Positions 157 through 64,000 of a DNA stretch of 64,000 nt are shown piece after piece. The notes under the pieces are model-generated. The model made no database searches and was not told where the DNA came from. It saw only the letters and a program-made list of their open reading frames with translations. The position numbers were made by a program, and so were the translations under genes. Source of the DNA: Perna viridis (taxonomy: Eukaryota); NCBI GenBank assembly GCA_037379345.1, contig CM074516.1, forward strand, positions 34,881,626 through 34,945,625, in the 5' to 3' direction. Every line of letters starts with the position of its first letter. Position 1 is the stretch's first letter.

Positions 157-363
157 CATTAATCCAAACCGGTCTTTGTGAACCACATCTCCCTGTACCA
201 GTTGGAGAAGTAGCAAGACTGTAGTTTCCCTCAAATCTGTACCACCCCTTGCTATAACTGGTGGACTCACAGCTATGTGAAGTTATTGAGTAACTGTAGT
301 CAGAATGACGAGATTTGTCATACTCTATAGAAGTGTAATTACTACAGGGGTCTGCCTGGGCTT
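157..363 (-). CDS. Exon E70, D8C N-half (D35, partial domain)
   Basis: 207 nt, AG/GT; EAQADPCSNY...RPVWING. Confidence 0.9.
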
Positions 364-3300
364 CTGCAATTGAAAACAATTATTCATTAATATGAAACAT
401 TATCACTTTAATCTCTGTAAAATTACTACTAAGCCCTATTTGTTAAATACTAGTAAGTCTTAAAGTTGACATAATGCACCCTAGACAAAAGGTTTGAATT
501 CATCAAGCTAAACACACCCTCACTACTTTTCAGCTTACATGAAAAATTCAAAGTTACATGTACAATAAGTAGACATGCTTGGAACAGAAAGCTGCCAGAG
601 TAGAAGTTGAAAGGAATAACAGACAGATGAACAAGATTATTACAGTATTGCCCATTTGAAGAGTTTGGTAATAAACCATGCATGGTAAATAAATGTATGT
701 AATAGGATATAACAGGAACATCAAGAGAAAAGAGTTTTACAAACTAGACTTGATTGTAACCATGACAACTTACCTGTACAGTATCGACCACAACCACTAA
801 AATATGGTGTCAGATAGAAGGAGTTGTAACCATGGCAATGCATAACATAAACATCCCAGGATTGTCCACAGTTAGAATCATTCCCCACCTTACAGGCTTT
901 CATTACGGATGTCTCTCCATACTCTGTTGGGAAGGTACCTACAGACAAACAAAGCTTGTTGTCAAATACTTTATGCAAACTCATAAAAATACCAGTTTTA
1001 GCTTTTGACTGTGCACATGCAAAGGGAAAATGTAAGGTTAACTCCCTTTGCCACTATCTGAATGAAGTATTTTATTTTGACATATTAATGTAGTTCAATT
1101 ATCACACAAGTTCACCGCCAAATGTGCCACATATCATAATCATATGGTGCTTGATTCATGATAATCATATGATAATTTTGGCCTGAAAATATTGATAATC
1201 ATGTGATAATCATATGTAAACTGAAATTTTGTAAGGTAATGATGATTATATATCAGTTATATATCAATTCCCTATATGGCTGTTCAAAAGCTGAATGTAC
1301 ACCATTATAAAAAGTGAGTACAGTCCTTGAACCGATCCATGCAACGATTAGATGGATTGATGATCGTTGACTGATAGATTGCTGACGGAACCATGACCGA
1401 TGACCGGTGACCGATCTGATCGCAGTTTTGTTATGTAAAATGATGTCAGATCTGTTTGAAATAAAAGAAATGTAAAATAAAAGTATGATTTGATGTTTAA
1501 ATCTATTACATTATGTAAATATGTGTAAAATTGACAAAGAAGACAATAAAATCCGTAAAATACAGTAACCGCTTTGTGGTCATGTGATGCGACCACTGGT
1601 TTAATTGATCGGTTTGACGGATCGATGACTGACTGGAAACTGATTGGTGACTGATGACCGATCGCAATTTTTTGTTGCATGGATCGGTTCAGGTACTGTA
1701 ATAATCGAAGTTAAATTAATATAATTCATTGTTTAACTATGCTACTTTAAGAAATTATTATACTCAGCTGCCAAAAAAAAAATCAGAAATAAGCAATCCA
1801 AAGTGTTCAATACACTTAAAAATATGAGTTGTAACAGTACAATAGTGAATGAAAAAATCAGGTATTCTGTTTAAGAACAGATGATGGCAATTAATGAATT
1901 TAACAGTGTTTGTCATAATAGATATGATCAAGGTTCAGACTTTATTTTACATATTCAACTTGCTTTATTGAATATTGTAATCTTACATATATCCAATATT
2001 TTATTATCAATGGGAAGAAATTGTATTGTATGAAACATGTTATCAAACATCCTACCTTCAGCCCATATAGGATACCATGTCCCACACTGTCCTTGGTCTG
2101 GGGTTGAGGTCAGGAGATTTTCTTGGCTGCCAAATCTGTACCATTCTGTCATGTGAATACCATCCATGTTGTAACTATAGTAACCATCACATTTGCCATT
2201 ATCCCCTGGCTGTAACCTGTTATTGACCAATCGGTTGATGTTACTATTTAAAGATGAGTACGACCAACATGGTCTGGTCCAGGATCTTTCCCAGGTTGTA
2301 TTTAAAGCCTCTGTAAACAATAAATGATTAAAATTCTTAACTTTGAAAATTTATCAATAATTATTTGATATTTCCTATTGCTGACATTGTTTCCACCAAT
2401 ACAATGTACTATCCCTGTAACTTACAGATGGTTAATCTGTGGTCAATTGTGAAAGGTCAATATAGAAACTGGTATTAGTTTACCAGAAAAAACAATGGGA
2501 TAAGAAAAAGCAGCAACAGTATAGGTAAAAACCATACGTACTTTCTGTTAATCCCTTCAGAACGGACTTTTATTTCTTTTTCACTTGACACTCACACAAT
2601 ATCATACATTAAGGTTGTCAAAGGATAATTGTTACAATATTTCTGGAAGTGTACAATGAACTGATAAGGATAATATCAGATAAAAGACAAATAGGAAAAC
2701 AATCTCTGGTAAAAAAAACCCAAAAGATGCCATAAATCTGAATTAGTTTGGCTTAAAAGGAATCACTTACCTAGACAATATCTGCCGCACATTCCTTGTG
2801 GTTTAAGGTGCAGGATATTAAAGGAGTCACATTTCTTTACAGGAACAGTCCAGCTGTAAGAACAGGGGTTTGTGTTCCCACCTTGACAAGCTTTCATGTA
2901 GGTAATTTCTTGGTCCATCTCAGGTTGTTGTCCTATAATAGAGTGAGGAGAAAAGTAATTATATAAAATGCTCTGCGGGCTGCAGGTGGATACAACCACA
3001 GAGGTTGACCCCAAAAAGTTGATACTGTATTGACACAACATTTAAACTTGATATGGCTTCTAATTTGGATTATATTTAAATCTTTCACATGACTATGTCC
3101 AGATGGAAAGTGGTCAAAGAGCTGTGAAAATTTGCAATAAGACATAAGAAATAAGCAATTTATAAACAGTTGAAGAGATTGCCTACTTCTTACCACTCTT
3201 AAGCCCTTGATACCTAAAAGGTAAGATACATAACCCTTTAAATCCATAAAAAATACCTTTAGTGGTATAGAACTTAGTAGTATAATATCATGGAGATTAA

Positions 3301-6300
3301 AACATTTTTGTTCTAAGTATTGCTTGGAAACCAGACAAATGTTTGTTTTAGGTCCCTTTTGGTAGTAATAGAAGTCCAAGTAACTTAAACTTGAAGTATC
3401 ACATTTGTACCTGAATCCTTTTAAACAATGTATCTAAATTCACTAATTACAAACCTTTCATCCAGATTGGTTCAGAAGTACCACATTGTCCATTTCCTAC
3501 AGGTGTCATGGCTGGTTGGTAATCTCCCTCAAATCTGTACCATCCATCAGAGTAGGAATACGATTCACAGCCATACCCACCCATGTAGTTATAAAAGTCC
3601 ATGTGTCGGGTGTGATCATATTCTATCAGGGTATAATTATCACATGGATCCTGGGCTAGTTCTAAAAATGTATTAAAACATAATTTTAATCAACAAATGG
3701 ATGCAATGGGAATGCTGATGATGTCTTTATATTATAGGATCAACATGACATGGTGGCAAATTTCAATATTCAGAGTATTTACAGGCTACTGATAACTGTA
3801 TTCTTTCAAAAATTATTGTTTTGAATATACAATGTTGAAAATGAATGGAATAAAGAAGATAATACCTTTTTAAGTCTCTAAACGGCTCTATCTATTGTCC
3901 AAGTGATAGATTTTGTTTATGATATGTACATGGAATTTATACTGCTGTAAAAACTGTCACTGCTGAGGTCATAAAAGTTGAATAACCAATCATAATGCAC
4001 GAAAAAGTCATATGCTAATTAGATTGGAATTATTATAGTTTAACAAGGTTGATAGTCATATAACCTGCACTGCTGGTTAAATTTTACATAATAGAATGCT
4101 ATAGTTCTGTAACTCATTAAATTTGTGGTGATATGAAGTACGAATGGTATCAAACTAATCTAGAATAATTCAACAAAATCTGACAGCAACAACGTTAAAA
4201 CTGATATTAAATTTAAATTTCATAAGGATTTGAAAATACCCACCAGTGCAGTATTTGCCACAGGGTTCATAATAACTAGGAAATCTGAGTTGAGCTACAT
4301 TATAGTCCCCACAGTTCATTACAGGAACTGACCAGGTTTCATTACAGTTAGTATCATTTCCTACCATACAGGCTGTCAAGTTATACGTCTCTGCATACTC
4401 TGATGGGTACTGACCTGGAATAAACAAATATGTATACAAATTAAATTCAGTATATGTAGATATAACTACTTGTATGTCAAGACAGTTAAGTACACCTGTA
4501 TCACTGATACATTTGTAGCTTATAGTTGTGAAAGGCTGAATGCAACTGTCACAACCTGATACATGGAGATGTTTCTACACTTAACTGAAAAAAAAAAATT
4601 ACCTAAATTTATATTTTCATTGTTATAAATTATAAGTATCAGGAAAGAGCCTGAACATGATCTTCTAATAAAACTTCAGAACCTTCATTCTTAATTAATC
4701 TAAAGGAGATTTACATCACATACCAGTCACATAACACCAGATTTGAAGCTCATTCTATACAGAAACAGAAACACCTTAGTGGAAGTCTATTGAGATATTG
4801 AACAAATTAAACCAATCAAATGTCCCTGTACAATAAAGGCCATGAAACTGCATGAAAGAAAGTAAGTTGCTTCCCTTTGTTGGAACTTCACTATATCTGT
4901 GATTCTACTTCATCAGCTAATGTAATTTTTATTTGTTGGGAATGCTGGAAAGAAGGTATCTTCAAAAGTGCCTTAAGAATGTAGCTATTACTAAATCAAA
5001 CATCAAAACATCAAATTAAAAAAATATACTCACCATCCAGCCATATTGGTCTCCATGATCCACACTGTCTAGGTTCTGGTGGTGATGTTAGAATGTCACC
5101 ATCGCTAAATCTAAACCAGTTATCACTATACATGCTGCTATAAAGATAGTTCATGTTCCATTGTCTGTCACATTGTTCCATGTCACCATTCTGTAGGGTA
5201 TAGTTTACACTTCGTTCAAATCCACCCTTCAGAATATGGTGATGATGACATGGTACATCCCATGGGATATTTCCTTCCTCTGAAAAAAGATGAGATAATG
5301 ATTACTATACCATAGAATGGTGAACAAGAATTTGCGCTTACAAGGTTTTAGCTTGTAAAACCTGTAAGTTTGATTATCTCTCTATGCAGGCATCAGAAGT
5401 AACTTGACTCCTTTCAAGCAAATTTATATATGAGACAAAAACATCAATAAAATTTCTTCAAAATCCTTTGAGTGGTTCAGGAGGAGTTACACTTACAAGA
5501 TATGTGGACAGACAACTGGATGGACATGACAGACAGGCAGCCAGGAAATTCCGAAATAACCCCCCTCCCCCTCCTCCAAAAAAACCCCAAAACAAAACAA
5601 ACAAAATATTGTTTGCAGGGCTATTAAAAATACCAATTGAGAAGCCTTTTTTTAACAAAAGGATGACAATATGACTCTTAAGAGATTGTAAGAAATAATA
5701 ATCAGTAACCTTTTTACAGATAATTAGGACTCTAACCAAAGAAAATAAAATCTCTATATTTACCTAGACAGTACCGCCCACAGCTGCCTGATGACTGTAG
5801 ATGGTAAATATGATAGTCTCCACATTTCATTGTTGGTATATCCCAGGTATTGTAGCAATCCATATAAGAATACATGTCACTAGCTTCACAGGCCTTTACA
5901 TACTTTACTTCTCCATCTACTGTGGGGAGGGTGTCTGGAACAAAAAGAGGGACAATTATACACAGGTATAGTAGCAATACATATCAAAATAGAGTCAGAT
6001 TCACTGGATTACATATACTTACATACTGTAACTATACAGTGGGGGGATTATGAATGTTTATCTTCCTATCTGACCTAGCCTAAACATCGTCTGAATGTTA
6101 TTACCTCTTTTCTTTGCAGACAAAAATCACTGTATGTATGAAGGATGAACAACTAAATCTATAGAAATATCTGATATTCAGAAACAAATGATGGATGACC
6201 CACTGAAAAGTGTCACACATAGTTCCATCCGTCGTGCTGAAGCTACATACCAAACTTTAAGTTTTTTCTATAAAGATTGTCTATGTTTTGTGGCTGTACA

Positions 6301-9300
6301 AAGGTTACAGTATTGTCTAATACTAATTAATGACAGTAAACTAAATACCCCAGTAGCATTAAATCAGAGGAAAACATTGAACAACTTCATACCATTGATC
6401 CAAACAGGACTCTGTGAACCACATCTCCCTGAAGCTGTTGGTGAGGTAGCAAGACTGTAGTTTCCCTCAAATCTGTACCATCTTGAACTGAAGCTCATTG
6501 ATTCACAGCTATGTGAAGTTATTGAGTAACTGTAGTCAGAGTGACGAGATTTGTCATATTCTATAGATGTGTAATTATTACAGGGGTCTGCCTGGGCTTC
6601 TGCAATTAAAAACAATTATTCGTTAATAAAATATATTATCACTTCAATGTTTACTGTAAACTGCTCATAACCATCATTGCTGAATACCTGTTAGTCTTAA
6701 AGTTGTCATGTTAAGCATACTTCTACTCCAATTCAGTTAAGTATACTCTTACTCCTTATCAGCTAACTTGAAACTGTTTAAGTCATATGATAAACATCTT
6801 AAATAAAGAGCAAGTAAGAGATGTGCTGGGAACCCTTAAAGTGGAGATACAGCACATGTCATACAACACTACTCTGTAGAATGTGAGAAAGAATGACAGG
6901 ACCGACAAGATTATCAAAGTATAGCCCAATTCATATAACATTGCAGGGTTAATAAATGAAGGAAATTATAGAAAGCTGAATAATCAATAAAAAAATAAAT
7001 ACTAATTTTAACCATATCATTTTTACTTGCCTGTGCAGTATCGACCACAACCACTAAAATATGGTGTCAGATAGAAGGAGTTGTAACCATGGCAATGCAT
7101 AACATAAACATCCCAGGATTGTTCACAGTTAGAATCATTTCCCACCTTACAGGCTTTCATTACAGCTGTCTCTCCATACTCAGTGGGATAGGTACCTACA
7201 GAGACACAAAATAGTCAGAATCATTTCCCACCTTACAAGCTTTCATCAAAGCTGTCTCTCCATACTCATTGGGAAAGGTACCGTCAGAGAAACAAATTAA
7301 GTTTGAGTCAATCCCCACATTGTAGGCTGTCATCATAATTTGTTTTACCAATAAGCATAATAAGATGATAAAGCTCATATCATAAGGGAAAATTTCATCA
7401 AAATTTAAGGACTCATTAATAATAACTGCCTAACAATTTCAATTTCTATATAAATACATGTACAAGAGCTAAAATTCAATAATAACCCAGAAAATTCTTG
7501 CAAAAGGAAAACTTCTTATTCCATACTCAATTCACGTGAAGGAGAATTACAGATTAATTTAATAATTTCATTCCTCAATAATGCAAAAAAAAAATGTCTG
7601 TTTAGGGTTACATTCCTCCCAAAAATAGGGTAGGTCGGTCGGCATTTGCATTTTATTATTTTTTTTCATTTTATTTTTTCTCGACTAAAATTGAGCCTAT
7701 ATTTGTAAAATAGCATCATGTTTAAGTCATGAAAGTGTATGGTTTTAAGTAGAAAGTTTAATTTTTAACATACACACCTATTAATCATGTCTTTTATTAC
7801 AATACACTTATTTTTTGTAGAAATTTTGAACAAAATACAAGTACACTGTATTTACGCTTGGATTTACGTGATATAAATAAGTCTCCTATTCAAACGCTAT
7901 AGTGACCTGGTTTTTAACGTACTTTCGGTTTTACTGGAAATGATCCGTATTATATTTTGGAGAAAAAATGTATTAGGGTCTGGAGAAAAAATTAGGGTTG
8001 GTCCGGAAACCCGAAACAGACATATTTTTTTGCCCTAAGTATATAACTTACCATCGACCCATATGGGTGACCTTGACCCACACTGCAGTTGAGATGGTGA
8101 CCAAGTCAGCAAGTTTTCACTGGTACCAAATCTATACCATTGTTCCATATCAATATCATTCATGCCCATATAGTAACCATGGTAACTGTCACAGTATTCC
8201 TGTTCTCCAGGTTGGAGAGTATAGTTTACCAGTCTATTAATACTACTGGAGATGTAGTTGTAGGAATGACAGGGAGTTGTCCAACTTCTCTCCCAGGTTG
8301 TGTTCTGTGCTTCTGTAAAAAATGATAAGATTTACAGATGACAACAGTAAAGGCTAATTGAAACATTCATGTAGATATATCATCTCCACCTTTCTTGAGC
8401 ATTTGTTTTCACTACAAAGCAGCATTTCTACAAAATCACTTGAAGATAGTAAGGGCTGTTAAAAGTCTTTGAGTATTTTAGAAATTTTGTTACTGGATAA
8501 TTTAAACAGCTCTCTAGGTAGAAATCTGCCCTATATTATACCAAAGTGTCCTACTTATTTACCACTGAAAACCTTGTGATCTTTTGGACACTGTCTTTTA
8601 TATGTGAATAGCTGTCAATTATGTTGACCATAACCTCTCTATTGTATCATCCACAAGTATGATTGGGTAGCTTGTCCTCTACATTTAAATGATTTACTTG
8701 TTACTGATTGGATAACATTGTTTTTTCAAATTTAAATATTCATACTAATGGGTAAACAAAGGCTATTTTAAGATTTTAATTGAATGTTAGTTAAAAGTTC
8801 TTTTAAAAAAAATTATATGCACATTCATACTTGACATTCTAAAAATGTGTAAATTTTAAGTAATGCTGTGTGTAATAAATGTCTGAGATGGTCCCTAGGT
8901 GTTCACTAATCATTCAATTAATACAACTCACTGAGGCAACTCAAATCATTGCTAAACCATTTTGAGGCATCTCAAATATATTTTCACAGGAAACCAAAGA
9001 CAATAGAAAAAAATGAGATAAATTTCAAAGGATTTCTTTAGAAAATTTAAATGCATAATGGTTTTATATTTAGAAAGACATGTGCATTTTCCCCACTTAA
9101 AGGAAATTGCAAGTTGAAGACATGGCCATTTTGCAAAAGTGTGACAATGAGTAACTTATAGCTCTATTTTAAATTTAAAATTAAATTTAACAATGTATGT
9201 GCATCTAATTCTTTTTAATTGAAGTTTTCAGACTGTTTTGTTTAAGAATATTTCGATGAAATGAACAATACTATCCAATCAGAAATAAGTAAAACACTTA

Positions 9301-57300: not shown

Positions 57301-60300
57301 CAATCATAATGTGATCTTCCCATGAGTAATTATATTTTCGTTTTCCATGATATTAACCATTTGATTATCCTATCTATTCACAGATTTTCTCAATAATTTA
57401 TTGCAATTGTCAACATAAATTTTAAATCTTATGATCAATAGATTGTAACTTTTTGGTGGGAGAAAGTCTGAGAGTGAAATTACCAAATTTGTTTCACAGT
57501 GTGAATTACTGATTTTTTTTTTGTTGCACAGGAAACATATGATAAATCACTGCTTTCTTTATAATACATCTTTTCCTATACCTTTCATCCAGATAGGTTC
57601 TGATGATCCACACTGCCCTTCTCCTACAGGGGTCATTGCTGGCCTGTAGTCACCTTCCATTCTATACCATCCATACCCCAATGATGAGGACTCACAGTTA
57701 TAGTTCATTCCCATTGGATGATAATAGTCCATGTGACGGGTGTGGTCATAGTCCAACAAGGTGTAATTAGAGCAAGGGTCTACTGCTGGTTCTGTAATAT
57801 AAAGTATATTAAAGGTGACAACTGCAGAGACACATCAGAATATATCATTATTTAAGTACCATTACCATCAGAGTTGGAGTTAATTTTTTTGTGTATACCA
57901 AGTGATTTACTGTGTGTTTATTTGTAGCAGTTTTGAATTTGAGTTGTAATTACAAATAAATTAATATTGACAGAGGAATGGATCTTCTACTCCTCAGCCA
58001 AAGTATCCTAGTTGTCAGGGAACTTTAAATGTGTGTATTAATGTTCACAGTTTTGTTTTCAATATGACTATCAGTAATTTGCAGTAAGAACAGCTATGTT
58101 TTAAACAGAAAATTTATATTTTTTTAACTAGAACTCTTCATATCAACTCAAGGAAACCACAGAACTGATACCAAACTATAAATATCTCAGACAGTACCAG
58201 TACAATATCTGCCACATTCCTTGTTATAATCCAAAGATTTGAGCTCTGCCACATTGAAGTCTGTACAGTGCATTACAGTAACATTCCAGTTGTGGTAGCA
58301 GTCTGTATCATTCACTACCATACAGGCTGTTAAGTTGGCTATCTCTCCATACTGTGTTGGGTACTGGCCTGTAATGAAACAATGCAAACTAAGTATATTA
58401 TTGAACCATAAAATCAGTCAAAATCATTAAGTCAGTCTAAGGATATGAACAGGGCTACTATAATTTTGGCACAATTTTTTTGACATATAATATGGCAAGA
58501 AACTATGAAACCATGAACATTGACAATTTGGGCTTAGAAGCATTCATGAATAGACTGCTAATAGTAAAGTTTATATATTGTAACATTATTATGTAATAGT
58601 TTTTGTACAGAATCAGCAGCAAAAATGCGAAAGTTTGAATTATGAAGCTGTAAAACATATTAAAGTCATGGCAAACTGGTATACAAACCTACCATCTAGC
58701 CAGATTGGAGACTGTGTTCCACATTGTCCTGGTTTTGGTGGAGATGTTGGAATGTCCTCTCCCTCACTAAATCTGGCCCATCCATCATGATATATACCAA
58801 AGCTATCATAAGTCCAGTATCTGTCACAATACTGGGCATCCCCTTCCTGGTAAGTGTAGTTTACACTCCTCTCAAAGTCACTCTGTACAACACGATGTTG
58901 GTGACATGGAACATCCCATGGTATGTTGCCTGGCTCTGTGTAACCAATTGTATTAGTATGTATCAAGAAGACAAAAGGCCAACAATGTTAAAGTAATTCA
59001 ATTTTATAAAGATAAATGCCAAAGAAATGCATTAGCCTGTTGTGAAAATACTTTAATTTGTGGATACTAATTTTCATGGATTAAAGAAAATACACAAATT
59101 CATTGATTCTTGAATTCATGGTTTTGAGGTTTTCAGCACACACATCAATGAAAATCTGCTTTTCGTTGAGAACCAAATTTCGTGGTCTGGCTCAACCACA
59201 AAAAAACACGAAAATTGGTACCCCATGAACAGTAGTACTTTCACAGTATGCATTTTGTACATGCATGTCAATGAATCAGTTCTATTTCAAGTACAGTGCA
59301 CATCGAAACCTATCTAATCTGAACCATGTTTAGTTTAGGCAGTTATTCAGTTTATACAGGTTTAAAATGCATTGAAAATGATGTAAAAGAGACTTCACAA
59401 GATTATATACAGAGGTTTCCAGTTGATGATGGGTTTAGCAGCACTTAACATGCAAATCCAAATCAATTCAAGTTCTTCATGCATTTATTGTTTAGAATCA
59501 AATGTCTAGTTTTAATATAACAGATTACAGGATCTTAGAAAGGGTACAGTAGCCCATGATAGCTTATGTTTTTTATTTACATGTAAAATGACTTTATTTT
59601 TATATAAAAAGGACACTTCAGTACTCAAAACTTAGCACTAACATTAGTAAAATCTTGAAGAATTTTTCATTTAACCCCAACAAAAGAATACTGAGGCATA
59701 ATCAAACACAATGAGACACCAACATATGAAAAGATAATTTCAGGACATTGAATGTATATTACCTAGACAATATCTTCCACACATGCCTGAGGACTGTAGG
59801 TAATAGATGTTATAGGAAGGACACTTCATTACAGGTATATCCCAGTTATAGGAACACCAATCTGAGGACATAGAGTCCATTTCACAAGCCCTGACATTAC
59901 TGATGGTACCTTCCATCTCAGGGAAAGTCCCTGGAATTGTTTATCAAAAGAACAATTATAAATTTATGCTGATGATAGTAAAATTTTCTACTGCTTAATA
60001 AATCAAGGTTCTTTTACATGTTATAATGTCTGATAAACACTTTTCCAAAATAAATACTAATAACATTTTTGCCTTCAATTGTGTTTATGAATTAGCATCG
60101 AAATAAATATGCAACTAATACTGCACATACTAATGAAAGAGTAAATAAGTATACCATGAGTTACACTAAAATTCAAGAATTCTACATAAAGAATATTGTT
60201 TTAAGAATGCTACTCACCATTAACCCATACTGTTGAGTAAGCCCCACAATGTCCATACACAGTAGGAGAGGTAGCAAGCTCAAAATCGCCTTCAAATCTA

Positions 60301-63300
60301 TACCATCTTTGATAAAAACTGGTGGATTCACAGTTATGTGTGGTAGTAGTATGACTATAGTCAGAATGACGCGACTCATCATAAGGTATACTGGTGTAAT
60401 TATTGCATGGGTCAACCTGAGGCTCTGCAATAACAATGTAATGCAATTTTAATTTAAATTGATGTTTTTACAACCTCTACCACTTCCTTTCTAAAAGATA
60501 AGAACTCCTTCAAGTTTTTCAACGAAGACAAATCAAGTAAGGAATGAAAGACACTAAAACTCATTAAGGAATGAAAGACACTGTAACAAAACTTCAGATT
60601 TTTTAGCCCTAACATAAAGCTCAGAATCAAACATTCTAATAAATAAAATCATGAACTTAAGTTTCTTTAGAAGTTGTAACAAAAGAATATTTAAAAATAA
60701 AACTTGTTCCTTACAATTCATATTGCAAGCATGATTATCTCCCTTTCATCAAGTTTAAACTAAGAACATACCTGCACAATACTTTCCACAGCCATAATAT
60801 ATAGGCGTCAAGTAGAATGAGTTATAACCATGGCAACGCATGACATAAACATCCCATGATTGTTCACAGTTAGAATCATTCCCAACCTTACAGGCTTTCA
60901 TTACTGCCATTTCAGCATACTCTGTTGGATAGGTACCTGCAGTTTAGAACAGCAAAAATATAAATGGGGATTAAAGTAATATCATTTGATTATTTGCAAT
61001 CACATTTCGTTAACCTTTTCATCCAGCAGAGGTTCTCTCTTACTGGTGTCTATCTGTTTTTTTTTCCAATTTTGAGTTATAACACATTATCCATATGGAT
61101 TATAAAAAAGCAAACAATGCATGTGTTCAAGAAGTTTTTAAACAACTTTAAATGAGTATAATTGCAGACTTACTTATGCTAAATAAAGATTTTATTGGGA
61201 CTGAACCCTTATACATTATTTTCATCTTCAAAGCAGCCATTTTGTTGTATAGTCTTTTATAAGGATAATTGTAAATGAAATTAGTGGTATCTGACATATA
61301 ATAACAGAGTAGAATTTTTTTGGTAAAAAGATGGTAGATGACATCAGATACCAGACATTCCAAGCGAAATGATGACATAGGTTCACAATGAAACTACTGA
61401 TCAGATCTAGATTTCTGTGATTATCTATGGCAACAAATAGAAATTGAATTAGTAGAGTAATTTAGAGGAGAAGAGCATATTCATATTCACAAATCCCAAT
61501 ACATCTATCAGCCTACCTTCCAACCAAACAGGATTCCTTGACCCACAAGATAGCTGTTCAGGTGCAGTGGTCGGTATGTTTTCATTGTTACCAAATCTGT
61601 ACCAGTCTGTACTGGTAATACCCTGCATACCACTATAGTAGTATCCATAGTAATTGTCACATGATTCTGATTCTCCAGGCTGAAGCTGATAGTTTACCCA
61701 TCTTTCAACATTTCCTGGCATTATACTAGGTGAGTAACATGGACTGTCCCACTGCATGGTCCATGTATCATTCTGGGCCTCTATAAAAAACAGTAACTAA
61801 CATAGATGAATAAAGGATGAGGGAAGTTTGATATTATAGGATGAGAGAAGTTTGATATTATAGGATGATGGAAGTTTGATATTATAGGATGGGGGAGTTT
61901 GATATTATAGGATGAGGAAGTCTGATATTATAGGATGAGGGAAGTTTGATATTATAGGATGAGGAAGTTTCATATTATAGGATGGGGAAGTTTGATATTA
62001 TAGGATGGGGGAAGTTTGATATTATAGGATGGGGGAAGTCTGATATTATAGGATGAGGGAGTTTGATATTATAGGATGTGGAAGTTTGATATTATAGGAT
62101 GTGGGGAGTTTGATATTATAGGATGAGGGAAGTTTGATATTATAGGATGAGGAAGTTTGATATTATAGGATGGGGAAGTTTGATATTATAGGATGGAGGA
62201 GTTGGATATTATAGGATGAGGGAAGTTTGATATTATAGGATGGGGGAGTTTGATATTATAGGATGAGGGAAGTTTGATATTATAGGATGGGGGAAGTTTG
62301 ATATTATAGGATGAGGAAGTTTGATATTATAGGATGAGGGAAGTTTGAGTGTTGTTTTGGCAGTTGTTTGCCAAATGTTTGTCCAGAGGATAAAAATTGG
62401 TTTACAAGAAGTGAAAAAAGACATGTTTGAAAACCTCATTAAAACCTTAATTGAAACTTCGTTTTAAAATGAAAAAATTGCAATGTTTTGCTATTTCTTT
62501 TTAGAAAAATTTAAAAATGTTTTTAGACACTTCATTAGGCTGTAAACACTGATGTTTATACAGATTTGTAACATACCTAAACAGTATCGCTTAATACACA
62601 TAGACATATCATCTCGTCTTAAATACATGATATCAAAGGAGCCACACTTCATCATCGGCACAGTCCAACTGCTAGAACAGGGGGAATAACTTGATGATTG
62701 ACAGGCTTTCACGTAAGAAGTTTCTCTATCAACCTCTGGTAATGATCCTAAAATGTATAAAAAGGGTGTCTAATTATTCAACTGATACAAGTTAAAACAC
62801 AAAGAACTTTTTGTTTTTGCTGCCTTTCAGAGCTCACTTAAAGGTGTGTTTACACTTGTTGAAGACCTTGAATATTTTGGATATGCTGGAACATTTGTTG
62901 TGTTACATTATATCTGTTCTTTATTCCATTTTAAAATAGTTATCAGAAAATCCTCGTGTTCTACCTAAATCATTCATTAACCAAAGCAATTCTATCTCAT
63001 TTCAAATATAAAACTGTAACTTTTATCAAGACAGGTTTATAAGGTCCACAATGTTTTGGAAACCTTACCTTTTATCCTAACATGCACATAGGACCCACAA
63101 CAGTCTGGGTTCAAAGGTGCCAGTCTATAGTCCTTCTATGAATCTTACCTTTTATCCAGACAGGTCTATAAGACCCACAATGACCTGGTCCTACAGGAGT
63201 TGTAGCCAGTCTATAGTCCCCTTCAATCCTATACCACCCAGTGGACCACACAGAAGACAGACAGGTTGTCATACTATTAGGGTTGTAGTAGTCAGCATGG

Positions 63301-63744
63301 AAGCTATCATCATATGATATGGTGCTGTAGTTATCACAAGGGTGTTGTTCTAGCTCTGTAAAATAAATCAATATCATAAAAACGTGCTTTCGTACTTTTT
63401 TTTGTGTAACTAAAATGCTTATTTTTTCATGGCAATCTAGTATATCTATAGTTTCATGATGAGTTTACATCATTTTCAATACAAAAGAGCATGAACATTA
63501 TTCTACTTCAGAAGATAAAACCCAAGCATTCATAAGCCCCCCGACATCTAGAGAATTACAATCAGTGACTTACCCATACAGTAACGTCCACAATTCTCTG
63601 ATCCCTTATTAGGCTCTAGGAAAGCTATATTAGAGTCATTACATTTCATCACATAGACATCCCAGCTTCTGTCACAATTAGAATCATTGCTGGCCATACA
63701 AGCTTCAACTGTTGTCATCTCTCCATAAAAATTTGGATATGACC
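157..63744 (-). CDS. Giant multi-exon gene (partial, open at both ends) encoding a tandem array of UMOD/GP2/OIT3-like D8C cysteine-rich domains; 70 exons, ~4,654 aa in window
   Basis: 70 exons with AG acceptors and GT/GC donors, all phase 1-1 with lengths divisible by 3, in strict N-half/C-half alternation. The joined pair has 8 Cys with WYRF, CG..x.P.W..G, AC and CGRYC motifs typical of the uromodulin/GP2/OIT3 D8C domain. Family assignment is from motif recognition, not a database search. Confidence 0.9.
774..938 (-). CDS. Exon E69, D8C C-half (D34)
   Basis: 165 nt, AG/GT; TFPTEYGE...CGRYCT. Confidence 0.9.
1321..1698. mobile_element. MITE (Tc1/mariner-type non-autonomous DNA transposon)
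   Basis: ~25-bp TIRs cagtccttgaaccgatccatgcaac / gttgcatggatcggttcaggtactg flanked by TA on both sides. Confidence 0.8.
2056..2310 (-). CDS. Exon E68, D8C N-half (D34)
   Basis: 255 nt; EALNTTWERSWTRPC...YPIWAE. Confidence 0.9.
2771..2932 (-). CDS. Exon E67, D8C C-half (D33)
   Basis: 162 nt; QQPEMDQE...CGRYCL. Confidence 0.9.
2965..3075. repeat. Dispersed repeat fragment, related copy at ~36190-36305
   Basis: gcaggtggatacaaccacagaggttgaccc resembles gcagcttgatacaactatagaggttgaaccc in a non-homologous intron. Confidence 0.5.
3455..3661 (-). CDS. Exon E66, D8C N-half (D33)
   Basis: 207 nt; ELAQDPCDNY...PIWMK. Confidence 0.9.
4244..4414 (-). CDS. Exon E65, D8C C-half (D32)
   Basis: 171 nt; QYPSEYAE...CGKYCT. 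Confidence 0.9.
5034..5279 (-). CDS. Exon E64, D8C N-half (D32; start of third higher-order repeat)
   Basis: 246 nt; EEGNIPWDVPC...RPIWLD. Confidence 0.9.
5764..5934 (-). CDS. Exon E63, D8C C-half (D31)
   Basis: 171 nt; DTLPTVDGE...CGRYCL. Confidence 0.9.
6393..6599 (-). CDS. Exon E62, D8C N-half (D31)
   Basis: 207 nt; EAQADPCNNY...SPVWING. Confidence 0.9.
7031..7195 (-). CDS. Exon E61, D8C C-half (D30), GC donor
   Basis: 165 nt; TYPTEYGE...CGRYCT; donor AG|GCAAGT. Confidence 0.85.
7583..8034. mobile_element. MITE with imperfect TIRs (copy at 28381-28834)
   Basis: gc(a)n tgtctgtttagggttac ... gaaacccgaaacagacata(t)n gcc. Confidence 0.65.
8052..8312 (-). CDS. Exon E60, D8C N-half (D30)
   Basis: 261 nt; EAQNTTWERSWTTPC...SPIWVD. 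Confidence 0.9.
8489..9653. mobile_element. Foldback-like element with ~250-bp degenerate inverted arms and a nested insertion
   Basis: 8489-8745 is the reverse complement of 9245-9376 plus 9534-9653 (e.g. gattgggtagcttgt/acaagctacccaaac; aaatctgccct/agggcagattt). Confidence 0.75.
9377..9533. mobile_element. Small MITE nested in the right arm of the foldback element
   Basis: Termini atagacc...ggtctat; interrupts the inverted-arm alignment. Confidence 0.55.
9772..9936 (-). CDS. Exon E59, D8C C-half (D29)
   Basis: 165 nt; SLPVTDGE...CGRYCT. Confidence 0.9.
10241..10441 (-). CDS. Exon E58, D8C N-half (D29)
   Basis: 201 nt; EPQEDPCNNY...DPIWMK. Confidence 0.9.
11460..11624 (-). CDS. Exon E57, D8C C-half (D28)
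   Basis: 165 nt; TYPTEYAEMSHMRVC...CGKYCT. Confidence 0.9.
13180..13455 (-). CDS. Exon E56, D8C N-half (D28)
   Basis: 276 nt; ESRNTTNSSSWDYPC...YPIWFD. Confidence 0.9.
13680..14840. repeat. Compound minisatellite (core acctagacagtatatcatcc) derived from the E55 donor end
   Basis: ~29/37/66-bp units; the core matches the exon end and donor at 14836-14851 (ctgacctagacagtat). Confidence 0.9.
14841..15005 (-). CDS. Exon E55, D8C C-half (D27)
   Basis: 165 nt; GLPTIDGE...CERTYCL. Confidence 0.88.
15457..15660 (-). CDS. Exon E54, D8C N-half (D27)
   Basis: 204 nt; ELAVDPCDNY...PFWLK. Confidence 0.9.
15868..16028. repeat. 57-bp tandem repeat, about 3 copies
   Basis: cagagacctt(c/t)caaggga(a/g)acag(g/t)tggtct(c/t)cttaca(c/g)aggtt at 15871, 15928, 15985. 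Confidence 0.85.
16156..16320 (-). CDS. Exon E53, D8C C-half (D26)
   Basis: 165 nt; TYPSSYGE...CGRYCM. Confidence 0.9.
17039..17326 (-). CDS. Exon E52, D8C N-half (D26)
   Basis: 288 nt; EPKEPVWTQTWDTPC...YPIWFN. Confidence 0.9.
17999..18160 (-). CDS. Exon E51, D8C C-half (D25)
   Basis: 162 nt; NFPTKENT...CGRYCL. Confidence 0.9.
19199..19402 (-). CDS. Exon E50, D8C N-half (D25)
   Basis: 204 nt; EQDIDPCSNF...NPIWMK. Confidence 0.9.
19606..19779 (-). CDS. Exon E49, D8C C-half (D24); possible in-frame alternative acceptor at 19872
   Basis: 174 nt; DGVYPTQYAE...CGRYCI. Confidence 0.85.
20534..20776 (-). CDS. Exon E48, D8C N-half (D24)
   Basis: 243 nt; EPGDIPWDVPC...PIWLD. Confidence 0.9.
21106..21276 (-). 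CDS. Exon E47, D8C C-half (D23)
   Basis: 171 nt; DTLPTVDQE...CGRYCL. Confidence 0.9.
21457..21663 (-). CDS. Exon E46, D8C N-half (D23)
   Basis: 207 nt; EPQADPCYNY...TVWIN. Confidence 0.9.
22126..22290 (-). CDS. Exon E45, D8C C-half (D22)
   Basis: 165 nt; TYPTEYGETSV...CGRYCT. Confidence 0.88.
22291..22555 (-). repeat. Three tandem echo copies (85-88 bp) of the E45 acceptor plus exon 5' end
   Basis: Extra AG|GTAC sites at 22375, 22463 and 22551. Confidence 0.9.
22862..23116 (-). CDS. Exon E44, D8C N-half (D22)
   Basis: 255 nt; EALNTTWERSW...YPIWTE. Confidence 0.9.
23381..23790. repeat. 50-bp minisatellite x8 related to the E43/E19 3' end and donor
   Basis: cacccctaacttagacattccttgtggattcagatgctggacactacagg units every 50 bp. 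Confidence 0.95.
23847..24008 (-). CDS. Exon E43, D8C C-half (D21)
   Basis: 162 nt; NLPEADKE...CGRYCQ. Confidence 0.9.
24443..24649 (-). CDS. Exon E42, D8C N-half (D21)
   Basis: 207 nt; EPAADPCDNY...EPIWMK. Confidence 0.9.
25040..25210 (-). CDS. Exon E41, D8C C-half (D20)
   Basis: 171 nt; QYPSEYAE...CGKYCT. Confidence 0.9.
25832..26077 (-). CDS. Exon E40, D8C N-half (D20; start of second higher-order repeat)
   Basis: 246 nt; EEGNIPWDVPC...RPIWLD. Confidence 0.9.
26562..26732 (-). CDS. Exon E39, D8C C-half (D19)
   Basis: 171 nt; DTLPTVDGE...CGRYCL. Confidence 0.9.
27191..27397 (-). CDS. Exon E38, D8C N-half (D19)
   Basis: 207 nt; EAQADPCNNY...SPVWING. Confidence 0.9.
27829..27993 (-). CDS. 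Exon E37, D8C C-half (D18), GC donor
   Basis: 165 nt; TYPTEYGE...CGRYCT; donor AG|GCAAGT. Confidence 0.85.
28381..28834. mobile_element. MITE, duplicate of 7583-8034
   Basis: Same TIRs; lies inside the 4-kb duplicated block. Confidence 0.65.
28852..29112 (-). CDS. Exon E36, D8C N-half (D18)
   Basis: 261 nt; EAQNTTWERSWTAPC...SPIWVD. Confidence 0.9.
29271..29577 (-). mobile_element. Decayed tRNA-derived SINE
   Basis: Minus strand shows an A-box-like tggtcttgtgg, a B-box ggttcaatccc, a taaagacttcaaaat core and an (aatc)n tail (plus-strand gattgattgattgatt). Confidence 0.6.
29949..30113 (-). CDS. Exon E35, D8C C-half (D17)
   Basis: 165 nt; SLPVTDGE...CGRYCL. Confidence 0.9.
30370..30645. repeat. 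Degenerate ~27-bp minisatellite
   Basis: Repeated aact(g/c)aact(t/c)a(t/c)tactgg. Confidence 0.8.
30712..30912 (-). CDS. Exon E34, D8C N-half (D17)
   Basis: 201 nt; EPQEDPCNNY...EPIWMK. Confidence 0.9.
31550..31750. mobile_element. MITE (second copy at 59041-59246)
   Basis: TIR ctgtgaaagtac/gtactttcacag with internal tttcgtgg and cacgaaaattggtacccc motifs. Confidence 0.75.
31993..32157 (-). CDS. Exon E33, D8C C-half (D16)
   Basis: 165 nt; TYPTEYAEMTH...CGKYCT. Confidence 0.9.
32967..33242 (-). CDS. Exon E32, D8C N-half (D16)
   Basis: 276 nt; ESRNTTNTTSWDYPC...YPIWFD. Confidence 0.9.
34033..34197 (-). CDS. Exon E31, D8C C-half (D15)
   Basis: 165 nt; SLPTVDRE...CERTYCL. Confidence 0.9.
34524..34727 (-). 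CDS. Exon E30, D8C N-half (D15)
   Basis: 204 nt; ELAVDPCDNY...PFWMK. Confidence 0.9.
35679..35843 (-). CDS. Exon E29, D8C C-half (D14)
   Basis: 165 nt; TYPSLYGE...CGRYCM; acceptor ttttaag. Confidence 0.88.
36721..37008 (-). CDS. Exon E28, D8C N-half (D14)
   Basis: 288 nt; EPKEPVWTQTWDAPC...YPIWFN. Confidence 0.9.
37475..37636 (-). CDS. Exon E27, D8C C-half (D13)
   Basis: 162 nt; NFPTKENT...CGRYCL. Confidence 0.9.
37987..38517 (+). mobile_element. Decayed Penelope-like retroelement reverse transcriptase fragment
   Basis: Manual translation with frameshifts and a stop: DLFLHSYEAD...SFLY/xDDIFLLNN...IYPK/LEIKDTTDTVNSVSYLDLHLEI...KLHDKCDDFKFHIVNFPF.SGNI...AY*VFVSQLIRYTKAC, matching the PLE RT Y-x-DD region and thumb. 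Confidence 0.8.
38797..39000 (-). CDS. Exon E26, D8C N-half (D13)
   Basis: 204 nt; EQDIDPCSNF...NPIWMK. Confidence 0.9.
39315..39488 (-). CDS. Exon E25, D8C C-half (D12)
   Basis: 174 nt; DGIYPTQYGE...CGRYCI. Confidence 0.9.
39970..40212 (-). CDS. Exon E24, D8C N-half (D12)
   Basis: 243 nt; EPGDIPWDVPC...PIWLD. Confidence 0.9.
40545..40695. repeat. ~29-bp tandem repeat x5
   Basis: ataggactcctgccatgacaga units. Confidence 0.85.
40718..40990 (+). mobile_element. 3' end fragment of the same Penelope-like family
   Basis: The start matches 38448-38515 (ttaagtt(a/g)tcactacagaa...ttatggttgt); inverted repeat gagcaact(cg)...(ca)agttgctc. Confidence 0.65.
41215..41385 (-). CDS. Exon E23, D8C C-half (D11), mosaic exon
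   Basis: 171 nt; DTLPSVDGE...CGRYCL. Confidence 0.9.
42591..42797 (-). CDS. Exon E22, D8C N-half (D11)
   Basis: 207 nt; EPQADPCNNY...TVWIN. Confidence 0.9.
43145..43309 (-). CDS. Exon E21, D8C C-half (D10)
   Basis: 165 nt; TYPTEYGE...CGRYCT. Confidence 0.88.
43310..43590 (-). repeat. Three tandem ~88-bp echo copies of the E21 acceptor plus exon 5' end
   Basis: Repeated caaaataaagttagaatcatt...gtctctccatact. Confidence 0.9.
43746..44006 (-). CDS. Exon E20, D8C N-half (D10)
   Basis: 261 nt; EALNTTWERSWTTPC...YPIWAQ. Confidence 0.9.
44861..45268. repeat. 51-bp minisatellite, about 8 copies
   Basis: caagccaccacgaagtaccctataaagtgaagtatgagtacatgtggaa units; 17-aa periodicity in the spurious ORFs. 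Confidence 0.95.
45405..45773 (-). repeat. ~64-bp tandem echoes (5-6 copies) of the E19 3' end plus donor site
   Basis: ggcaccccttaccttgacaatatctgcc...ctgaggttta at 45443, 45506, 45570, 45634, 45698. Confidence 0.92.
45774..45935 (-). CDS. Exon E19, D8C C-half (D9)
   Basis: 162 nt; HLPGIDQE...CGRYCQ. Confidence 0.9.
47720..47926 (-). CDS. Exon E18, D8C N-half (D9)
   Basis: 207 nt; PAEDPCDNY...EPIWMK. Confidence 0.9.
49168..49338 (-). CDS. Exon E17, D8C C-half (D8)
   Basis: 171 nt; QYPTEYAEKYNLTAC...CGKYCT. Confidence 0.9.
49658..49869. mobile_element. Non-autonomous DNA transposon with TTAA target duplication (Kolobok-like); inverted copy at 63802-64000
   Basis: ttaa|ggaggtagaccaagggtaag ... 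cttaccatagatctacatcc|ttaa. Confidence 0.75.
51410..51950. repeat. Degenerate tandem repeat (catacgttagcatggtaagaatt / catcagcatgagtagaga) interrupted by a dispersed repeat at ~51682-51830
   Basis: The insert shares aatcaagggaaccaaggtt...tccagggacaaa.accagacatg with 46390-46457 and gagcaactcgg with 40864. Confidence 0.7.
52751..52906. mobile_element. Palindromic MITE
   Basis: taaggagtgactgttatattttttcagtc / gaccgaaaaaatataccagtcatttctta, with nested internal inverted repeats. Confidence 0.75.
52964..53199 (-). repeat. Two ~117-bp echoes of the E16 3' end plus donor
   Basis: caccatc(a)agccatattggtctccatga...ctaggttctggtggtgatgt repeated at ~52965 and ~53081. Confidence 0.9.
53200..53445 (-). 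CDS. Exon E16, D8C N-half (D8; start of first higher-order repeat)
   Basis: 246 nt; EEGNIPWDVPC...RPIWLD. Confidence 0.9.
53804..53974 (-). CDS. Exon E15, D8C C-half (D7)
   Basis: 171 nt; DTYPTTMGQ...CGRYCL. Confidence 0.9.
54491..54697 (-). CDS. Exon E14, D8C N-half (D7)
   Basis: 207 nt; EFQEDPCYNY...TVWIN. Confidence 0.9.
55258..55422 (-). CDS. Exon E13, D8C C-half (D6)
   Basis: 165 nt; TYPTEYGE...CGRYCT. Confidence 0.88.
55815..56075 (-). CDS. Exon E12, D8C N-half (D6)
   Basis: 261 nt; EALNTTWDRFWDSPC...YPIWAQ. Confidence 0.9.
56636..56797 (-). CDS. Exon E11, D8C C-half (D5)
   Basis: 162 nt; HLPETDRE...CGRYCL. Confidence 0.9.
57582..57791 (-). CDS. Exon E10, D8C N-half (D5)
   Basis: 210 nt; EPAVDPCSNY...EPIWMK. 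Confidence 0.9.
58198..58368 (-). CDS. Exon E9, D8C C-half (D4)
   Basis: 171 nt; QYPTQYGE...CGRYCT. Confidence 0.9.
58693..58935 (-). CDS. Exon E8, D8C N-half (D4)
   Basis: 243 nt; EPGNIPWDVPC...SPIWLD. Confidence 0.9.
59041..59246. mobile_element. MITE, same family as 31550-31750
   Basis: tgtgaaaatac...gtactttcacagta, with shared internal motifs. Confidence 0.7.
59763..59930 (-). CDS. Exon E7, D8C C-half (D3)
   Basis: 168 nt; TFPEMEGT...CGRYCL. Confidence 0.9.
60218..60424 (-). CDS. Exon E6, D8C N-half (D3)
   Basis: 207 nt; EPQVDPCNNY...TVWVN. Confidence 0.9.
60772..60936 (-). CDS. Exon E5, D8C C-half (D2)
   Basis: 165 nt; TYPTEYAEMAV...CGKYCA. Confidence 0.9.
61517..61780 (-). CDS. Exon E4, D8C N-half (D2)
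   Basis: 264 nt; EAQNDTWTMQWDSPC...NPVWLE. Confidence 0.9.
61814..62348. repeat. ~24-bp minisatellite, about 22 copies
   Basis: gaagtttgatattataggatg(a/g)gg units. Confidence 0.95.
62577..62747 (-). CDS. Exon E3, D8C C-half (D1)
   Basis: 171 nt; SLPEVDRE...CIKRYCL. Confidence 0.9.
63149..63355 (-). CDS. Exon E2, D8C N-half (D1)
   Basis: 207 nt; ELEQHPCDNY...RPVWIK. Confidence 0.9.
63574..63744 (-). CDS. Exon E1, D8C C-half (D0; its N-half lies outside the window)
   Basis: 171 nt; SYPNFYGE...CGRYCM. Confidence 0.88.
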
Positions 63745-63801
63745 CTATAATAGAACAATTACCCTACTTACCTTCAATGTACATGAATTGTATGCATTTA
63801 A

Positions 63802-64000
63802 GGAGGTAGACCTAGGGTAAGGGACACAACTCTTACAAACCATTGGAATGTTTGTATTCAGCATTTTACATCCATCTCATGTAAGCACCAAAGTAACTTG
63901 GACTAGTTTCATTCTCTTTCAAAGGGAAGCTTGAAAGGCTTTGGTGAAATTGAATATGATACAAACATAACACTGATTTCAAGAGTTATGCCCCTTACCA
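63802..64000. mobile_element. TTAA-flanked MITE, inverted copy of 49658-49869 (truncated by the window end)
   Basis: ttaa|ggaggtagacctagggtaagggacacaactct; the body is the reverse complement of 49670-49860. Confidence 0.75.

Follow-up and report, generated by a model that had tools for sequence, protein, structure and literature searches.

A giant gene of the mussel Perna viridis predicted to encode 48 tandem GP2/uromodulin-type D10C domains on a membrane-anchored stalk

The 64,000-nucleotide stretch of the Perna viridis genome analysed here (the window; GenBank assembly GCA_037379345.1, contig CM074516.1, hereafter G000:C6:34881626-34945625; assembly of 723 Mb in 46 contigs, G+C content of approximately 33% throughout the window) contains a long series of exons for cysteine-rich domains that very probably belong to the D8C (or D10C) family known from the vertebrate proteins GP2 and uromodulin (UMOD). 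Translation of open reading frames (ORFs) in six frames, together with hidden Markov models (HMM) iterated from one seed exon per kind, identified 35 full exons of a first kind (A) and 35 of a second kind (B), all located on the minus strand and alternating strictly (Table 1). They extend over positions 157-63744, the series opening with a B exon and closing with an A exon, and correspond to 34 whole and two half domains, which reproduces exactly the 70 frame-compatible exons, the domain count and the outer limits listed in a preliminary description of this DNA. The giant size suggested there (more than 4,650 amino acids) also stands, although the exact sum is slightly lower, namely 13,938 nt or 4,646 amino acids. 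A exons encode approximately 70-95 residues with three cysteines, and B exons approximately 55 residues with five cysteines. Every exon of the window is of phase 1/1, has a length that is a multiple of three and is free of in-frame stops; given a genome with 33% G+C, 70 open exons with eight conserved cysteine positions per pair cannot be the result of chance.

The splice sites are equally regular. Every exon is preceded by a pyrimidine tract and an AG acceptor in phase, the acceptors of the A exons being predicted positions. A exons end in ...P-x-W-x-x-G, where the donor splits the glycine codon after its first base, and B exons in ...Y-C-x-G, with the donor at the matching relative place. 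Across the 96 exons of the complete array (see below) the donors are GT, with the exception of three GCAAGT; GC-AG introns are a known minor class. These GC donors (G|GCAAGT) are carried by three B exons, one at G000:C6 ~34,869,707 and two in the window (7031, exon 70, and 27829, exon 46), the latter two lying within the 99% identical tract discussed further on. In a single window exon (exon 26) the donor reads A|GTGAG where G|GT is usual. Neither a second domain type nor the start or the end of a gene was found inside the window, and no start or terminal exon interrupts the array.

Examination of 80 kb on either side of the window placed these exons in a larger array of 96 exons and 48 domains (G000:C6:34,860,920-34,958,502; 6,395 amino acids), thus raising the "at least 36 domains" of the preliminary description to 48. 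Each domain is approximately 133 residues long and is encoded by two exons, with an intron splitting it at a W-x-x-G | T-x-P junction; all 96 exons are symmetric in phase 1. A genome-wide search recovered the 48 A exons of the array, 48 out of 48 without stops. Downstream of the array, towards lower coordinates, a short Ser/Thr-rich exon comes first and is followed by a Ser-rich exon of approximately 350 residues, formed by 25 copies of a 42-nt unit that encode 14-residue, SSSDWTMTSSS-like repeats (L017:6404-7439). According to tblastn, the exons after the array align in the same order with the last 870 amino acids of a Mytilus galloprovincialis "VWFD domain-containing protein" (P0160), to which they are 35-80% identical, and the colinearity reaches the transmembrane helix. 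A VWD domain (PF00094) is recognized on the exon L018:8639-8863(-) with 30.6 bits (cut-off 22.9), in a region colinear with P0160, where VWD covers residues 976-1128. One or two EGF-like exons remain sub-threshold (EGF_TEN 17.4 bits, EGF_alliinase 15.1 bits), and an IPT/TIG-like exon of the same C-terminal cassette gives a weak Pfam match. Two dibasic R-x-K-R sites are conserved between this gene and Mytilus (RGKRS/RSKRS and RRKRS/RKKRS). The transmembrane helix, read directly from the sequence, is MWIIGVITAGLLLIIIVILLV and precedes the short tail KCCFKKR. Among the C- and N-terminal exons VWD alone exceeded its Pfam threshold, other matches being weak or spurious; Pfam scans gave no ZP match in any exon downstream of the array and no SEA, NIDO or AMOP domain in the exons outside it, and a protein atlas query with the 150-residue exon preceding VWD returned no usable match. 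The earlier statement that the product is built only of D8C domains therefore holds within the window and not for the gene, whose Ser-rich stalk, VWD cassette, EGF-like exons and transmembrane helix lie outside; the extension of the contig that had been proposed for finding the C-terminus led to that helix.

At the other end, the first A exon is preceded by an acceptor and contains no methionine, and at least one 5′ exon is consequently missing from the model. A heuristic scan revealed a putative signal-peptide exon 1.5 kb upstream (L008:4322-4382(-), MNAMKVHVLLLSFIKLLIGS, with a phase-1 CAG|GT donor). An ORF resembling exon 1 and originating from another data set (P0028) is 84% identical, and its contig ends before any upstream exon. 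The gene extends over approximately 34.845-34.958 Mb of G000:C6 on the minus strand, at least 115 kb, and the full protein is estimated at approximately 7,700 amino acids. We consider it very probable that the window holds exons 10-79 of one intact minus-strand gene, and that 48 D10C-type domains, a Ser-rich stalk, a VWD cassette, conserved dibasic sites and a transmembrane helix are united in its predicted product.

The assignment of the domains was approached through Pfam and profile searches run on individual exons, i.e., half-domains, or on their alignments. The best match in the PDB of a profile built from the 35 A exons (A1) is the human GP2 decoy module (chain 7p6r_A, residues 33-95, E=2.2e-6), and that of the corresponding profile of the 35 B exons (A2) is the same chain at residues 95-150 (E=1.7e-3), the two matches being adjoining and colinear. 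The two profiles also tile a loach protein (P0003) along its 17 Pfam D8C_UMOD domains, and they flank and cover the Pfam domain in the loach and coral arrays described below. For the nearest multi-domain homologue, a four-domain protein of M. galloprovincialis (P0002), an AlphaFold2 model was obtained with a predicted local distance difference test (pLDDT) of 81.9. All 12 Foldseek matches of this model at E<=1e-3 are GP2 or UMOD, with template modelling (TM) scores of 0.78-0.86 and a root-mean-square deviation (rmsd) of 2.1-2.2 Å (GP2 7p6r, TM 0.78-0.79, rmsd 2.2 Å; UMOD 9nu1_S, TM 0.86), and the next unrelated match follows at E=0.04. The UMOD/GP2-type identity given in the preliminary description is borne out by the colinear GP2 profile matches and by the fold of this homologue, and the mussel domains are, in all likelihood, homologous to the D8C/D10C domain of the GP2/UMOD decoy module.

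D10C is defined by ten conserved cysteines that form five disulfides, C1-C8, C2-C9, C3-C6, C4-C10 and C5-C7 (PMC8930769). Eight of the ten GP2 cysteines are aligned in the mussel domains (C1, C2, C4, C5, C7, C8, C9 and C10), and since the absent C3 and C6 are bonded partners in GP2, exactly one disulfide is lost; the four others are expected to remain. On its cysteine pattern, the mussel domain is best described as the D10C fold minus one bridge and not as the historical "D8C" cysteine set. This 3+5 pattern is present in 48 of 48 domains, exon 1 having one extra cysteine.

The human GP2/UMOD decoy module (PDB 7P6R/7P6S/7P6T and 7PFP; PMC8930769) is the same domain by sequence profile and predicted fold. 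It shares with the mussel gene the framework DPC...CD...GWYRF...CG..P.W..G...AC...C...C...C..YC, and the N65 sequon of GP2 (DPC-x-N-Y-T) is kept in every second mussel domain. However, GP2 and UMOD contain one copy and the mussel gene 48, all devoid of the C3-C6 disulfide; the mussel gene also lacks the beta-hairpin partner, the flanking EGF I-III and the ZP polymerisation module, and ends with a transmembrane helix where GP2 and UMOD have a glycosylphosphatidylinositol (GPI) anchor. To our knowledge, work on the D8C/D10C domain has been limited to vertebrate proteins that contain it once. The statement that vertebrate proteins carry just one such domain proved incorrect, as the loach Paramisgurnus dabryanus protein XP_065098668.1 has 17 Pfam D8C_UMOD domains and a ZP module; the domain is furthermore present in VWDE. 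A comparable predicted protein exists in the coral Montipora capricornis (XP_068722945.1; 11 D8C_UMOD and ZP-N). Both are uncharacterised head-to-tail arrays of the same domain, but differ from the mussel gene by their strong Pfam D8C_UMOD matches, by ending in a ZP module (as do UMOD and GP2) and not in a VWD/transmembrane cassette, and by being at most one third as long. When 1.84 billion representative proteins were searched with the A1 profile, 422 were found at E<=1e-3; stretches were counted in the best 150 of these 422, and none of these 150 had more than 17 matched stretches. The 48-domain array is thus far longer than any found, and is an extreme form of a type of tandem D8C array already present in public predictions. 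Our literature search brought up no publication dealing with tandem D8C/D10C arrays or with molluscan members of this family.

VWDE, listed among the D10C proteins, combines D10C, VWD and EGF (PMC8930769). The mussel gene likewise has D10C domains, followed by VWD and sub-threshold EGF-like parts, and the Pfam family "Vwde" (PF26129) is among the precomputed matches of the Mytilus homologues of the C-terminal cassette; PF26129 was absent from our own Pfam scans of mussel exons and homologues, in a library from which the model may be missing. Differently from VWDE, with one D10C and many EGF repeats, the mussel gene has 48 D10C-type domains, the Ser-rich stalk, few EGF-like units and the transmembrane helix. 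We know of no membrane anchor in VWDE. As judged from its sequence, the mussel gene can be called VWDE-like and membrane-anchored. A further likeness concerns the membrane-tethered mucins of the MUC4 type, which have a long repetitive glycosylated ectodomain, VWD, EGF-like units, a single transmembrane helix, a short tail and a possible cleavage near the membrane. The mussel gene has the same overall layout, including Ser-rich tandem repeats and a membrane anchor, but its repeats are folded, disulfide-bonded and predicted to be N-glycosylated instead of unstructured Pro/Thr/Ser (PTS) sequence, and only approximately 350 residues are Ser-rich. As no SEA, NIDO or AMOP domain was detected, the mussel gene is outside the named mucin families.

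The closest relatives are uncharacterised Mytilus proteins, namely M. trossulus XP_063404491.1 (1,551 amino acids, 10 domains) and M. galloprovincialis VDI75281.1/VDI75282.1 and VDI67677.1 (VWFD domain-containing), whose D8C exons are up to 68% identical to those of the P. viridis gene and whose C-terminal cassettes are 35-80% identical. They have in common with the P. viridis gene the alternation of long and short domains and a cassette of VWD, EGF-like exons, a dibasic site and a transmembrane helix, but their arrays are shorter (4-10 domains in gene models). The putative orthologous locus of M. galloprovincialis (UYJE01009653.1:192362-223455) has approximately seven domains in a gapped assembly. 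Note also that the annotation of this locus shows two genes 6.5 kb apart, one for the D8C array and one for the VWD cassette, which are probably a single gene divided in annotation, and that this family is probably represented by split or truncated gene models in related mussel genomes.

Within the array, A exons of a long type (W-D-x-P-C-H..., with an insert) and of a short type (E-P-x-x-D-P-C-x-N-Y-T...) alternate without exception, and from domain 9 onwards four-domain units build a 12-domain higher-order repeat. Copies of this higher-order repeat have exons that are 87-97% identical, whereas their introns are no longer alignable. The exception is a tract of approximately 4 kb that is 99% identical including its introns (window positions 4230-8319 vs. 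~25030-29120, domains 35-37 vs. 23-25), which suggests that it was duplicated or converted very recently, or else duplicated locally in the assembly. Between exon copies of the same type, the ratio of nonsynonymous to synonymous substitution rates (dN/dS) is approximately 0.2 in every divergence class, and the proportion of nonsynonymous differences (pN) is below that of synonymous ones (pS) in 256 of 257 same-type pairs, pairs that are not independent of each other. The pattern of exon and intron divergence is that of purifying selection on the sequences compared, perhaps with exon-biased conversion.

These data bear directly on the possibility that the locus is not one functional gene, but an array in decay, several separate short genes lying side by side, or a shorter array lengthened artificially in the assembly. 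Such a reading could draw on the failure to find a spliced product in protein collections, on the 99% identical tract and on the exon fragments duplicated in several introns (see below). However, none of the 96 exons contains a stop and all retain their phase-1 splice sites and all eight cysteines; dN/dS is low; most repeat copies have fully diverged introns, so that collapsed or duplicated reads do not explain them; over 2.3 kb, the locus agrees at 100% with a public contig of a different data set; and no internal start or terminal exon was found in the array. Conservation of the exons next to diverged introns argues against both a pseudogene and an assembly artefact, and with the open frames, the splice sites and the dN/dS this reading was rejected; we regard it as extremely improbable. 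The preliminary description had itself named the pseudogene alternative, which the open exons and the dN/dS make unlikely.

The same repeat structure might be expected of a recognition molecule, acting between gametes (egg coat or sperm) or between self and non-self, whose repeat number and higher-order repeats would evolve in concert, as they do in other reproductive proteins with tandem domains. The higher-order repeats with their very recent 99% identical tract, the homogenisation of exons relative to introns, which could reflect gene conversion, and the approximately seven copies at the Mytilus locus, suggestive of fast change in copy number, would all suit it. Against this, the dN/dS shows no sign of positive selection, Pfam scans detected neither a ZP module nor another known gamete-recognition domain, and the gaps in the Mytilus assembly make the copy number uncertain, so that we consider a role of this kind very unlikely.

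What the selected exons would present at the surface is suggested by their glycosylation sites. The array exons contain 114 N-x-S/T sequons, at least one per domain. The motif P-C-x-N-x-[ST] occurs in 24 of 24 short-type domains and in none of the long type, and aligns with D61-P62-C63-Q-N65-Y-T of GP2. The oligomannose glycan at GP2 N65 is required for binding of the bacterial adhesin FimH (PMC8930769), in agreement with what the preliminary description stated on glycan presentation by UMOD and GP2. In our reading of the profile alignment, the mussel domains have no sequon at the position of UMOD N275. Because of the 114 sequons and of the GP2-N65 sequon in every second domain, a highly multivalent glycoprotein is plausible.

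On the whole, we favour with moderate confidence an explanation in which an intact giant gene encodes a glycan-presenting membrane protein that acts as a decoy or capture surface. The product would be a type-I membrane protein of approximately 7,700 residues, in which the domains form a beads-on-a-string rod (roughly estimated at 150-200 nm) with more than 100 N-glycans, carried on an O-glycosylated Ser-rich stalk at an epithelial surface such as that of gill, mantle or gut. The ectodomain could be shed by cutting at the dibasic sites. As a component of the surface or of mucus, it may present many glycans in a regular array and bind microbes or particles that carry lectins, or make them aggregate, in effect a GP2/UMOD decoy in many copies. 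By way of context, exposure of Mytilus to a bath with Vibrio splendidus strongly lowers, in the gill, transcripts annotated as uromodulin and GP2, which rank with the most down-regulated genes (PMC7772429). The decoy or capture function, taken by itself and drawn from the analogy with GP2 and UMOD, is put forward tentatively, as a possibility that may well not hold.

Another function compatible with this architecture is that of a structural or adhesive scaffold of the extracellular matrix, serving cell-matrix adhesion, tissue morphogenesis or regeneration, as proposed for VWDE, or belonging to the byssus, periostracum or shell matrix. Cutting at the dibasic sites would set it free, and its VWD and EGF parts would mediate cross-linking. 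Mussels produce many giant secreted structural proteins of repetitive sequence, and a cassette of VWD and EGF-like units is typical of matrix and gel-forming proteins. In addition, vertebrate VWDE, combining D10C, VWD and EGF (PMC8930769), is required in blastema-based regeneration (PMC7390686). On the other hand, the membrane anchor with its short tail suits a cell-surface protein better than bulk secreted material, the high density of N-sequons and the Ser-rich stalk are features of a mucin-like molecule, and we found no report in the literature of D8C arrays in byssus or shell. We judge a matrix scaffold to be unlikely, albeit a contender to be taken seriously.

Several observations weigh against the membrane-bound, glycan-presenting protein proposed here. 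The start of the gene is represented only by the candidate signal-peptide exon. No spliced product of P. viridis was found in protein collections, where the same-species proteins are single-exon ORFs called on unspliced contigs, and a query with a 145-residue exon ORF found nothing. With regard to the domain, searches of ten single window exons, each of which covers part of the Pfam model only, gave no Pfam D8C match at E<=1, and the nearest Mytilus homologues reach 16.9-20.6 bits against the cut-off of 27 bits of PF23283 (D8C_UMOD). The D8C match expected in the preliminary description was obtained with our own profiles, which hit GP2 7p6r, and not with Pfam D8C_UMOD. The missing match on single exons is due to half-domains and divergence and not to absence of the domain, and the mytilid subfamily is, from its sequences, a divergent branch of the D8C/D10C family. 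Furthermore, the fold result comes from P0002 and not from a spliced domain of the window. Concerning function, P-C-x-N-x-[ST] is present in 55 of 214 domains of the family (26%), and is a feature of a subtype, not a universal one, which one subtype may simply have inherited. Finally, the beta-hairpin that forms the glycan groove of GP2 and UMOD has no counterpart in the mussel gene, and for this reason neither the type of glycan nor lectin binding can be deduced.

A broader view, which by analogy we offer as distinctly doubtful, is that D10C may be an ancient, pre-vertebrate module that shows a protected N-glycan to microbial lectins, and that the mussel multiplied it into a "super-decoy". 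Here, 24 sites of the GP2-N65 type would each alternate with a partner domain that possibly replaces the missing beta-hairpin, the array being held by a membrane stalk open to cleavage, on an epithelium used in filter feeding. Since all 96 exons are of phase 1/1, valency and length could, in this view, also be tunable by the skipping of exon pairs. The domain is medically important through the FimH decoy of GP2 and UMOD, and UMOD mutations causing kidney disease cluster in it. A selectively maintained invertebrate array of 48 copies with the GP2-type sequon would provide a natural test of glycan presentation as the ancestral role of the fold, and its 48 paralogous sequences would serve to map what the D10C fold tolerates, including loss of the C3-C6 disulfide. 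For a filter feeder that shares its habitat with Vibrio, the product is also a candidate molecule of mucosal defence or of particle capture.

Table 1. Exons of the D10C-type array in the window, from the iterated HMM search of ORFs and the A- or B-exon alignments (window coordinates; short A type, with PC-x-N-x-S/T sequon)
Exon	Half	Domain	A type	Position	Strand	Remark
10	B	5		63574..63744	-	A half of domain 5 beyond window
11	A	6	short	63149..63349	-	PC-x-N-x-S/T sequon
12	B	6		62577..62747	-	
13	A	7	long	61517..61780	-	
14	B	7		60772..60936	-	
15	A	8	short	60218..60424	-	
16	B	8		59763..59930	-	
17	A	9	long	58693..58929	-	
18	B	9		58198..58368	-	
19	A	10	short	57582..57791	-	
20	B	10		56636..56797	-	
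21	A	11	long	55815..56075	-	
22	B	11		55258..55422	-	
23	A	12	short	54491..54688	-	
24	B	12		53804..53974	-	
25	A	13	long	53200..53445	-	
26	B	13		49168..49338	-	donor A|GTGAG
27	A	14	short	47720..47926	-	
28	B	14		45774..45935	-	
29	A	15	long	43746..44006	-	
30	B	15		43145..43309	-	
31	A	16	short	42591..42797	-	
32	B	16		41215..41385	-	
33	A	17	long	39970..40212	-	
34	B	17		39315..39488	-	
35	A	18	short	38797..39000	-	
36	B	18		37475..37636	-	
37	A	19	long	36721..37008	-	
38	B	19		35679..35843	-	
39	A	20	short	34524..34727	-	
40	B	20		34033..34197	-	
41	A	21	long	32967..33242	-	
42	B	21		31993..32157	-	
43	A	22	short	30712..30912	-	
44	B	22		29949..30113	-	
45	A	23	long	28852..29109	-	
46	B	23		27829..27993	-	GC donor GCAAGT
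47	A	24	short	27191..27397	-	
48	B	24		26562..26732	-	
49	A	25	long	25832..26077	-	
50	B	25		25040..25210	-	
51	A	26	short	24443..24649	-	
52	B	26		23847..24008	-	
53	A	27	long	22862..23116	-	
54	B	27		22126..22290	-	
55	A	28	short	21457..21663	-	
56	B	28		21106..21276	-	
57	A	29	long	20534..20776	-	
58	B	29		19606..19779	-	
59	A	30	short	19199..19402	-	
60	B	30		17999..18160	-	
61	A	31	long	17039..17326	-	
62	B	31		16156..16320	-	
63	A	32	short	15457..15660	-	
64	B	32		14841..15005	-	
65	A	33	long	13180..13455	-	
66	B	33		11460..11624	-	
67	A	34	short	10241..10441	-	
68	B	34		9772..9936	-	
69	A	35	long	8052..8312	-	
70	B	35		7031..7195	-	GC donor GCAAGT
71	A	36	short	6393..6599	-	
72	B	36		5764..5934	-	
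73	A	37	long	5034..5279	-	
74	B	37		4244..4414	-	
75	A	38	short	3455..3661	-	
76	B	38		2771..2932	-	
77	A	39	long	2056..2310	-	
78	B	39		774..938	-	
79	A	40	short	157..363	-	B half of domain 40 beyond window

Some of the exons in Table 1 are accompanied by short tandem duplications (period 64-116 nt) that straddle an exon edge and copy the splice site together with part of the exon. Six of them cover 5′ parts of B exons (7127-7296, 19710-19983, 22222-22554, 27925-28094, 32094-32246 and 43241-43591), one covers the 3′ part of a B exon (45399-45827) and one the 3′ part of an A exon (52964-53277). They leave one to five extra exon fragments in the adjacent intron, and conserved cysteines are lost in these (e.g., KAC to KAY or KAS); because of this loss, the fragments look like decaying pseudo-exons, which could compete for splicing. 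The introns also contain minisatellites at 13718-14864, 23375-23787, 44861-45267 and 61814-62348, with periods of 36-66, 50, 51 and 47 nt, respectively, yielding long spurious open frames on the minus strand (e.g., ...ICVDDILSRS... repeats).

D8C-type exons are not confined to this locus. On the same chromosome, a second array (G000:C6:22,045,263-22,064,633) has at least 13 A exons, partly with a period of 3,756 nt, and approximately 25 further copies of A exons are scattered over other chromosomes. At the edges of the window, an element of approximately 200 bp (63797-64000) has more than 40 copies of 90-95% identity on many chromosomes and a short inverted match at one end, resembling a short interspersed nuclear element (SINE) or a miniature inverted-repeat transposable element (MITE), and positions 1-43 match many genomic loci at 100%. 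Beyond the C-terminus of the gene, the next ORFs, read by eye, are fatty-acid-hydroxylase-like, Ras-like and CTP-synthase-like. Upstream of the first A exon, again by reading, transposon remnants (L008/L009, G000:C6 ~34,963,500-34,967,800), consisting of an ORF resembling the C-terminal part of a reverse transcriptase and two transposase-like ORFs, precede an acyl-CoA-dehydrogenase-like gene.

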